Virus record (IMG/VR): IMGVR_UViG_3300043410_001892
Span: 248,001 to 312,000 of that record
Length of the DNA stretch: 64,000 nucleotides
Reading direction: 5' to 3' (one strand)
In this document: in pieces, positions 12,723-13,015 of the stretch
Numbering within the stretch: the first letter of the stretch is position 1
Layout of the letters: each line of letters opens with the position of its first letter
Position numbers and translations under genes: made by a program
Notes under the pieces: model-generated
The model's input: only the letters and a program-made list of their open reading frames with translations
What the model was told of the DNA's origin: nothing
Database searches by the model: none

Positions 12723-13015
12723 TGGTGTGCTATTACGCTAAAGACCTGTCTTCGACATCCTAATTAACTCTCGGACATGTTAAGTTTAACTATTAGGAAA
12801 AACATCCTTAACATGTAGGGTATACCTCCCTCATCCGTTTAATATAGCAATCACTTTAGACTCGTAACAGCCATTAAGGCATATTGCCGGACTCTATATT
12901 AACGCAGTTACATACGCTTACAGGTTGCTTTCGCACTGCCGTAAGTTTAAGTATCACTTTAGCAAAGTTTGCGGGTCACTCTTTAAATGATGGCTGCTTC
13001 TAAGCCAACATCCCA
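12723..13015 (-). ncRNA. structured ncRNA mimicking 23S rRNA H43/H44 (GTPase-associated centre) with a ~240 nt insertion
   Basis: 5' GGATGTTGGCTTAGAAGCAGCCATCATTTAAAGAGTG ... 3' AGCGTAATAGCACACCA; many internal helices. Confidence 0.8.

Follow-up and report, generated by a model that had tools for sequence, protein, structure and literature searches.

The minus strand of a 64,000-nucleotide (nt) stretch of viral DNA (IMG/VR record IMGVR_UViG_3300043410_001892, positions 248,001 to 312,000; the whole stretch is called the window here) carries, at window positions 12717-13021, a complete element that contains both halves of the GTPase-associated center (GAC) in 23S ribosomal RNA (rRNA), namely the end of helix 42 (H42), H43, and H44. 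The element is one of about 200 distinct homologs that we found in IMG/VR viral contigs and in cultured phages, and these appear to constitute a new class of phage non-coding RNA that is apparently undescribed. Judged by comparison of its members, the family has been selected to keep the tertiary fold of the GAC and its exposed loops. The interpretation that we tentatively put first, and to which we give somewhat less than an even chance, is that of a stand-alone, trans-acting replica of the GAC that captures a GAC ligand, most likely the host ribosomal protein uL11.

The GAC-Like Element in the Window

Positions within the element are given in E. coli 23S numbering, which we take from the 1051-1108 fragment and anchor on A1067 and A1095. 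On this presumed numbering, minus-strand positions 13015-12978 (UGGGAUGUUGGCUUAGAAGCAGCCAUCAUUUAAAGAGU) correspond to 23S positions 1053-1090, and 12738-12723 (GCGUAAUAGCACACCA) correspond to positions 1091-1106. The two halves of the GAC are split by a 235-nt insert. Read from its 5' end, the element consists of a 9-position stem strand, GGAUGUUGGCUUAGAAGCAGCCAUCAUUUAAAGAGU, the insert, UUUA, GCGUAAUAGCACAC, and the complementary stem strand, with the following parts:

13013-13021, minus strand: terminal stem, 5' strand (H42-like; 1047-1055), pairing with 12717-12725 with one U.C mismatch at 1052/1107
12987-13012, minus strand: G1056 and the H43 analog (1057-1081), with the UUAGAAGCA loop including A1067; matches large-subunit (LSU) rRNA
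12978-12986, minus strand: U1082-A1086 mini-hairpin, then G1087, A1088, G1089, and U1090; supported by family covariation
12743-12977, minus strand: variable arm of 235 nt between U1090 and G1091, with a GACC/GGUC closure and several hairpins
12739-12742, minus strand: UUUA linker of the three-way junction (family consensus UUUR)
12726-12738, minus strand: H44 tip G1091-C1100 (GUAAUA loop, with A1095), then A1101, C1102, and A1103
12717-12725, minus strand: terminal stem, 3' strand (1104-1112), read from the sequence and covarying in the family

An earlier reading of the same DNA, made from its letters alone (the original prediction), had placed the element at 12723-13015. Those coordinates are correct, although the complete element is slightly longer, its terminal stem reaching to 12717 and 13021. 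The same reading held that the two ends match H43 and the A1095 loop of H44; the sequence indeed reads that way, and a permissive Rfam scan aligned 13013-12971 with positions 1096-1145 of the bacterial LSU rRNA model (24.7 bits, E 1.2e-5). Beyond this match, the permissive scan (E up to 10) returned nothing credible for the window element, including no group I intron, GOLLD, or ROOL, which bears out the expectation that the element would not fall into an already described Rfam family. In 20 other member loci, as in the window element, the Rfam matches were confined to weak LSU hits to the 5' half.

At Rfam gathering thresholds, the whole 64-kb window contains 11 tRNAs and a two-piece transfer-messenger RNA (tmRNA) and no rRNA, in line with the claim that no other rRNA lies nearby. 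The GAC sequence was not part of a full-length 23S gene in the window or in 20 member loci. A covariance model built from six other, short members matched the window at 12712-13027 (minus strand) with 58 bits (E 1.2e-10), and this was its sole match in the 64 kb. Minimum free energy z-scores were unremarkable (-0.63 for the window element and -1.09 for the arm), and thermodynamic folding was not used as evidence. Both minimum free energy folding and RNAalifold misfold the GAC core, because the core depends on tertiary contacts.

Family Size and Distribution

Homologs were collected with three independent pattern scans of IMG/VR, directed at the 3' half, at the 5' half with C1072, and at the 5' half with U1072, and by BLAST against deposited phage genomes. 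Strict motif extraction gives about 182 distinct elements, and the covariance model recovers more. The 20-nt pattern for the 3' half was found in at least 119 IMG/VR contigs. Among the 119 matches listed, 112 are preceded on their own strand, at a distance of 22-360 nt, by the 5' half; of the other seven, most ran into a locus edge or were picked up by the covariance model. The 5'-half pattern brought in 80 new viral loci, of which 75 continue with an insert of 28-445 nt and then the 3' half. This pattern could equally match genuine 23S rRNA, but none of the 80 new viral loci continues as rRNA. The homologs keep H43 and H44, as anticipated if the likeness to the GAC seen in the window was real.

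In deposited genomes, the split architecture lies in unannotated intergenic gaps of cultured phages. Carriers include Cronobacter phage GAP32, Pectobacterium phage CBB, Xanthomonas phages XaC1 and XbC2, Aeromonas phage 4_4572, Serratia phage BF, Pseudomonas phage pf16, and seven Erwinia phages (pEa_SNUABM). The hosts are diverse, spanning Enterobacterales, Pseudomonas, Xanthomonas, Aeromonas, and Clostridia, and some carrier contigs were binned with Bacteroidota and candidate phyla radiation (CPR) bacteria. Some phages have two copies of the element. Those of IMGVR_UViG_3300033069_000905 (loci L037 and L123) are about 10 kb apart, and locus L092 (3841-4342) holds two tandem copies that are highly divergent and have different arms.

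Cellular genomes were surveyed with the 3' pattern across 185,579 bacterial and archaeal species, each represented by a single genome. This gave 95 matches, only 23 of which are true copies with a 5' half; the other 72 lack it and were set aside as chance matches of the 20-mer. The 23 copies lie mostly on small contigs of metagenome-assembled genomes or in prophage regions (Flintibacter muris and two Clostridia isolates), and the family is essentially viral. As a separate observation, Paenibacillus phage Pd_22F (L005, MZ092003.1 82476-85512) contains an unannotated, contiguous piece of genuine 23S rRNA; this is not a member of the family and represents host DNA or an assembly contaminant.

Secondary Structure and Covariation

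All members have one layout in common. A terminal stem is followed by G or A at 1056, H43 with its UUAGAAGCA loop, the 1082-1086 mini-hairpin, and G1087, A1088, G1089, and U1090. The variable-arm helix comes next, and then the UUUR linker, the H44 tip from G1091 to C1100 with a GUAAYA-type loop, A1101, C1102, A1103, and the 3' strand of the terminal stem. With U1090 paired to A1101 and G1087 to C1102, H44 continues through a three-way junction, and the arm exits from its 5' strand between 1090 and 1091. The U1090-A1101 pair and a compensated closing stem had been proposed from the window element by itself, and both hold at the level of the family.

Since the search patterns fix some positions, the conservation of each half was taken only from scans selected on the other half. 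Unless noted otherwise, counts for pairs and for the 5' half refer to 98 distinct members selected on the 3' half. Pair 1058-1080 is UA in 44, GC in 24, AU in 23, and CG in 4; pair 1082-1086 is UA in 48, CG in 30, and AU in 16. Two-sided changes are also seen at 1054-1105 (GC 75, AU 23), 1057-1081 (AU 86, CG 9), and 1064-1074 (CG 91, AU 7), and at 1055-1104, GC is replaced by AU in 14 of the 75 members from the second (5'-half) scan. The pairs of H43 are 98-100% paired, with double changes, and its loop positions are 83-100% conserved.

The terminal stem covaries across the whole family, with all four Watson-Crick pair types represented. It is a plain helix of variable sequence and length that ends after about 5-12 base pairs, with only U1053-A1106 and G1054/G1055 conserved. 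The ribosomal site for uL10, that is, H42 with the Kt-42 kink-turn and the junction-proximal sequence, is not found in this stem. The original prediction, which named L10 next to L11 as a possible ligand, is refined on this point.

The covariance model recovers all 98 test loci. Standard pairs fill 96.7% of the alignment cells, compared with 75.1% in shuffled alignments, and at 15 of 20 pairs both partners are seen to change. The covariation score of 0.546 (0.127 when shuffled) was matched by none of 500 shuffles, and controls in which the partner was slid by 1-3 columns scored at most 0.17.

Tertiary Fold and Conserved Residues

The ribosomal GAC has a base triple in which C1072, from the H43 loop, joins the C1092-G1099 pair of H44, and this triple docks the H43 loop on H44. 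It reportedly covaries as U.(U-A) in the rRNA phylogeny, a finding said to go back to Conn, Gutell, and Draper in 1998. The same covariation is present in the phage family, with C.(C-G) in 152 members, U.(U-A) in 27, and mixed combinations in 3 (2 x 2 counts 152, 2, 0, and 27; Fisher p 4e-30). When members were selected on C1072, C1092-G1099 was found in 54 of 56 and U-A in the other 2. When they were selected on U1072 with the 3' half left free, 26 of 27 distinct members had U1092-A1099, one had U-G, and none had C-G. The tandem copies of L092 differ in this respect, one having the C.(C-G) and the other the U.(U-A) triple.

Other residues on which the fold depends are nearly invariant, including U1060 (98 of 98), A1077 (98), A1085 (98), A1088 (97), G1071 (97), and A1084 (97). 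In the ribosome, the C-terminal domain of L11 hydrogen-bonds the U1060-A1088 tertiary pair (PMC2175356, citing Wimberly et al. 1999). The invariance of U1060 and A1088 in the phage RNA is consistent with their pairing, which invariance alone cannot show. Position 1061 is A in 25 of the 98 members and U in the window (13007); a U1061A change is known to stabilize the GAC tertiary fold in vitro. Given the covariation of helices and triple and these near-invariant residues, we conclude that members adopt the three-dimensional fold of the GAC and not merely its hairpins.

Solvent-exposed A1067 and A1095 face the N-terminal domain of L11, translation factors, and thiostrepton. A1067 is A in 90 of 98 members, and A1095 is A in 98 of the 105 members that were selected on the 5' half. 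Among the same 105, A1101 is A in 100, position 1096 has A in 82 cases and G in 22, and position 1097 varies freely. In the linker, U is kept at each of its three sites in 100-104 members, with G (85) or A (20) at the fourth. G1089 and U1090 are each kept in 97 of the 98 members selected on the 3' half. Set against the bacterial LSU consensus of Rfam, the phage RNAs vary less at 1089 and 1090, have A and not U at 1101, and are looser at 1096. Pairing of the linker UUU with A1084-A1086 was considered and rejected, as the linker stays unchanged when 1086 changes.

The Variable Arm

The arm ranges from 22 to 441 nt across the family, with a median of about 130 nt. In the shortest members (L121, L140, L152, and L047), the whole element is about 100 nt, and the arm is a hairpin of 22-23 nt. 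What the original prediction described as a large insertion is present in the window at 235 nt, but in the family it is a variable arm that can shrink to a 22-nt hairpin, and it is neither an intron nor the functional core. At the base of the arm, the first and second closing pairs form in 100% and 98% of members, respectively, and GC, AU, UA, and CG are all seen there. For the internal helices described in the window arm (UGC-GAAA-GCA, a GGGAGG..CCC hairpin, and ACAUGUUAAG/CUUAACAUGU), there is some compensatory support in close relatives, but this subfamily is too conserved to prove the fold of the insert.

Across the 182 members, no universal motif is common to the arms. A recurrent module, ACCCC-(tetraloop hairpin)-GGUAAGG, stands directly before the 3' strand of the closing helix in 37 of 182 (e.g., L021, L069, L096, L061, and L008), and a second module, UGCGAAAUG...GUGAUGUGC, occurs in 17 of 182; the window arm has neither. 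Mimicry by the arm of further parts of rRNA, for example the sarcin-ricin loop, was also considered and discarded, with no LSU match outside 1091-1152. A loop-E-like AGUA/GAA reading of the base of some arms did not hold (6 of 182). The inserts have no conserved catalytic core or processing motif, and the window element and 20 other member loci gave no group I or group II intron signal.

Genomic Context

Phage tRNA genes are frequent neighbors of the element. They are present in the fetched flank of 62 of 98 distinct loci, about a third being without them, and 39 of the 98 have one no more than 100 nt away, in many cases 1-8 nt from the terminal stem. The 499 flanking tRNAs are, without exception, on the strand of the element. 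By its co-oriented position abutting tRNA genes, the element resembles a stable RNA of a tRNA operon. It may be released from tRNA-operon transcripts, with its ends set by tRNA processing and with the terminal stem serving as protection.

The location within a tRNA cluster that the original prediction had noted is part of a wider island in the window, devoted to translation and RNA repair. The island includes tmRNA, a PTH2 peptidyl-tRNA hydrolase, an RNA ligase, a "Swiss Army Knife" (SAK)-type HAD domain, a kinase-like AAA_33 protein, and a metallophosphoesterase. The features closest to the subject are:

12528-12602, minus strand: tRNA-Thr(UGU), the first downstream tRNA, 114 nt past the end of the terminal stem
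13712-13739, minus strand: putative sigma-70-type promoter by consensus match (TTGACA, 16-nt spacer, TATAAT; 12 of 12 hexamer positions)
3550-6085 and 17449-19639, minus strand: RNA-repair set of metallophosphoesterase, AAA_33, SAK-type HAD, and RNA ligase
11224-11625: PTH2 peptidyl-tRNA hydrolase, apart from the RNA-repair set

The promoter likely starts a unit composed of the open reading frame (ORF) at 13681-13025, the GAC mimic, tRNA-Thr, tRNA-Ser, and tRNA-Ser. The ORF (13025-13681, minus strand) encodes 218 amino acids and stops 3 nt short of the element. Its match to tRNA-synt_2b, the class II aminoacyl-tRNA synthetase core, stays below threshold (27.2 bits, with the cutoff at 29.3), and it matches no PHROG; it could encode a truncated or paralogous synthetase-like protein.

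We found no conserved partner protein. In an all-against-all clustering of ORFs within 3.5 kb, the best cluster was present in 8 of 98 loci. A Pfam survey of 125 neighboring ORFs from 73 dereplicated loci gave a heterogeneous picture, with a scattered CCA-adding enzyme, RtcB, and RlaP and no ribosomal protein. These surveys revealed no ribosomal-protein gene of the kind that a ribosomal-protein leader would precede; the neighbors are tRNAs or unrelated small ORFs. A tmRNA is a neighbor of the element in the window and, as a full tmRNA less than 2 kb away, in L096 (1861-2208), and matches to YrlA-like Y RNA that fall below the gathering score are present within 2 kb of it at L110 (512-644) and L059 (1253-1479).

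An amber-suppressor-type tRNA with the anticodon CUA is present in 7 of 98 loci (L022, L039, L092, L093, L140, L152, and L178). In L140, L152, and L178, it is the tRNA nearest to the element, at 48-294 nt. For part of the family, they might point to some connection with stop-codon recoding or release-factor competition. A family-wide link with stop-codon recoding was rejected: the tRNA occurs in only these seven loci, the test of ORF lengths was not discriminating, and the window phage gives no sign of recoding.

Several other features of the window deserve mention in their own right. The tmRNA is of the two-piece (permuted), betaproteobacterial type (25620-26062, minus strand) with the tag peptide AKASKFEYMTVDFSLEAADMVA. 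A full-length gene for AmoC (1659-2429, minus strand; Pfam E 2e-121) is an auxiliary metabolic gene that indicates an ammonia- or methane-oxidizing host. Taken together, the tmRNA type and amoC suggest a betaproteobacterial host, possibly a nitrifier. Within the RNA island, a 469-amino-acid DUF2828/DUF7788 protein is encoded at 7896-9305 (minus strand). A Ro60/Y-RNA reading of this protein was abandoned, there being no sequence match to solved structures and no family-wide association. A NAMPT-like nicotinamide phosphoribosyltransferase adjoins a cytidylyltransferase-like/NUDIX protein at 21567-23829 (minus strand) as an NAD+ salvage pair; phage NAD+ salvage pairs have been reported to counter NAD-depleting defenses. 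Further along the minus strand are an adenylate/guanylate cyclase with a CHASE2 sensor (29150-31228) and a 3134-amino-acid ORF without an assigned function (54474-63878).

Discussion

In the model that we place first, a terminal stem made from the 5' and 3' ends would protect the RNA, H43 and H44 dock on each other just as they do in the ribosome, and the variable arm leaves through the three-way junction. The RNA would be co-transcribed with phage tRNAs, and many members would probably be freed by RNase P and by the 3'-end processing of adjacent tRNAs, so that it might accumulate at tRNA-like levels. The mimic would then capture a GAC ligand, with uL11 as the first candidate. The original prediction had suggested L11 and L10, translational GTPases, RelA, and a ribosome-targeting defense or antibiotic, a list that we narrow by argument. 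Isolated 1051-1108 RNA is the classical high-affinity site for uL11, which is its one universal high-affinity ligand, and L11 reads the folded RNA through its C-terminal domain. With no dedicated partner protein nearby, a universal host ligand is favored. The universality of uL11 matches both the spread of the family over unrelated hosts and the lack of a co-inherited phage protein, and for this reason, uL11 capture is ranked first. The pf16 member has G1058, where Pseudomonas 23S presumably has U1058-A1080. By this comparison, the lineage-variable pairs appear not to track host rRNA, which would fit a ligand that is specific for shape, such as L11.

Capture of uL11 would be expected to yield L11-poor ribosomes that respond poorly to RelA, with a blunted stringent response, and that are altered in release factor 1 (RF1) and general factor function. 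L11-deficient ribosomes are known for the relC phenotype, in which RelA is not activated, and for weakened RF1-dependent termination. Alternatively, the resulting RNA-protein particle might itself be the decoy. A broader proposition is that, in phages of many bacterial phyla, the replica strips away uL11 or some other ligand of the GAC, or intercepts it, and thereby reprograms the control of host translation, possibly by a shutdown of RelA alarmone synthesis or a shift in release-factor use; this we advance with more hesitation than capture itself.

Several points weigh against uL11 capture. The arm exits H44 only 2-3 nt from A1088, where a clash with the C-terminal domain of L11 is possible. 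A1096, which is conserved in the bacterial LSU consensus, is relaxed in the phage family (A 82 and G 22 of 105), and therefore not every GAC function is preserved. A sponge would compete with tens of thousands of ribosomes in which L11 is held cooperatively with L10, and titration may be inefficient. Simple L11 mimicry leaves G1089, U1090, A1101, the UUUR linker, and the obligatory arm unexplained. Finally, the setting of the window element in an RNA-repair island (RNA ligase, SAK-HAD, and AAA_33) fits a role in an RNA-damage conflict at least as well.

This last point leads to the alternative that survives best, which we nevertheless regard as unlikely: the RNA could act as a trap or decoy substrate against something directed at the GAC, be it a toxin or defense effector that modifies or cleaves RNA or a thiopeptide-type antibiotic. 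By its abundance, it would absorb the attacker and allow the ribosomes to go on working while the infection lasts. The GAC is a known toxin target, as the bacterial Rhs effector Tre23, an ADP-ribosyltransferase, is reported to modify H44 of the GAC. The countermeasures against RNA damage around the window element (tRNAs, tmRNA, PTH2, RNA ligase, SAK-HAD, and AAA_33), the RtcB, RlaP, and CCA-adding enzymes near other members, and the conservation of target-facing loops with A1067 and A1095 all agree with such a role. On the other side, hosts as diverse as those of the family would require a near-universal GAC-directed agent, and we know of none that acts as an anti-phage defense. Positions 1096 and 1097 of the H44 loop also vary freely. 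RNA decoys against defense toxins do have a precedent in pseudo-ToxI (PMC3475682).

We consider direct binding of the RNA to RelA or to a translational GTPase, whether L11 takes part or not, improbable as a means of tuning elongation, termination, or alarmone synthesis. Such binding would account for the conservation of factor-facing A1067 and A1095 beyond the needs of folding, and the tRNA(CUA) in 7 of 98 loci, adjoining the element in three, could hint at release-factor competition in some lineages. However, when the sarcin-ricin loop and the L10/L12 stalk are lacking, binding of factors to the isolated GAC is weak; the element mimics neither of the two, and no other LSU region matches. The suppressor-tRNA association is itself weak, and recoding is not apparent in the window phage.

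Equally doubtful is the view that the GAC fold is merely a stabilizing handle, possibly protected by L11, while the variable arm is the working part. Every member has an arm, which is large in many and built with recurrent modules such as ACCCC-loop-GGUAAGG (37 of 182). Yet, the arms range from 22 to 441 nt without a universal motif, and selection is focused on the GAC core, including its exposed loops.

Action in cis has very little in its favor. The element might be an autoregulatory leader of the ribosomal-protein type, a processing or termination signal of a tRNA operon, or an intron or intervening sequence that is cut out to leave a small GAC RNA. The window element does lie 3 nt after an ORF and before tRNAs, and taking out the arm together with the UUUR linker recreates the bacterial consensus GAGUGCGUAA. 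Nevertheless, no gene family recurs consistently on either side, the window element and 20 other member loci give no group I or II intron signal, self-splicing is impossible for arms of 22-23 nt, and U1090-A1101 and the closing helix make a three-way junction rather than splice sites.

The idea of a decaying piece of host 23S captured by a phage, or of an assembly contaminant, is almost certainly wrong and is refuted by covariation: genuine rRNA pieces do occur in some phage records, as in Paenibacillus phage Pd_22F, but about 200 homologs share the same derived features (the arm, UUUR, and A1101) with compensatory and base-triple covariation and are present in complete cultured phage genomes without other rRNA sequence, so that the earlier view of a structure under selection, as opposed to decayed rRNA, is upheld.

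A full-text literature search did not find the family described, although an unnamed earlier listing is possible. A 2023 catalog of 10,006 anonymous viral structured-RNA candidates reports no overlap with rRNA predictions (PMC10690425). We also found no description of viral RNA mimicry of the ribosome itself. If the proposed role is correct, the family would stand as the first known case of a viral RNA imitating an rRNA domain and would make up a new class of RNA for host takeover or counter-defense, adding an rRNA-domain decoy to the tools with which phages hijack translation (tRNAs, tmRNA, ribosomal proteins, and aminoacyl-tRNA synthetases). Unlike most orphan phage non-coding RNAs, the family is abundant, phylogenetically broad, and interpretable down to a base triple, which makes for a testable hypothesis about its ligand, be it uL11, translation factors, or GAC-directed agents. 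Its study could reveal a new means of silencing the stringent response or unrecognized GAC-directed host defenses. The natural versions of about 100 nt and the tolerated arm position may also offer a compact scaffold that folds well and binds protein, with a permissive insertion site for RNA engineering.

Among known systems, the closest is the GAC of 23S rRNA itself (H42-H44, E. coli 1051-1108; the uL11/thiostrepton domain). The phage RNA has near-identical loops, H43, H44 tip, and 1082-1086 pair, and it shares the tertiary determinants U1060-A1088, G1071, and the covarying 1072.(1092-1099) triple. It differs in being a stand-alone RNA of about 100-530 nt with no other rRNA, in having H44 broken by a three-way junction with the arm and UUUR, in A1101 and the relaxed 1096, and in an H42 that is a plain covarying stem with no kink-turn or L10 site. 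A separately encoded GAC is known from fragmented organellar rRNAs, such as those of apicomplexan mitochondria, where it is a small RNA. Those pieces join a ribosome that is without this domain, whereas the 23S of the phage host is presumably intact and the arm and closing stem of the phage copy would not fit the ribosome.

Leaders of ribosomal-protein operons (L10, L1, and L20) likewise reproduce the binding site of a ribosomal protein outside of the ribosome. However, these are cis-regulators in the 5' untranslated regions of ribosomal-protein operons of cellular genomes and are mostly loose mimics, while the phage RNA is a near-exact replica located among tRNAs or unrelated phage genes and has no Rfam leader match. 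With 6S RNA, pseudo-ToxI, and tRNA-like decoys, the family would share a logic, in that an abundant, stable RNA imitates a nucleic-acid ligand and titrates its target; the object that is mimicked and the fold are different, and for the phage RNA, sequestration is a proposal. The RNAs of phage tRNA islands (GOLLD, ROOL, tmRNA, and YrlA-like RNA) occupy the same niche, co-oriented with tRNA arrays in large phages. The family has no sequence or structure match to any of these, and in contrast to them, it comes with an identifiable structural model, the GAC of the ribosome.

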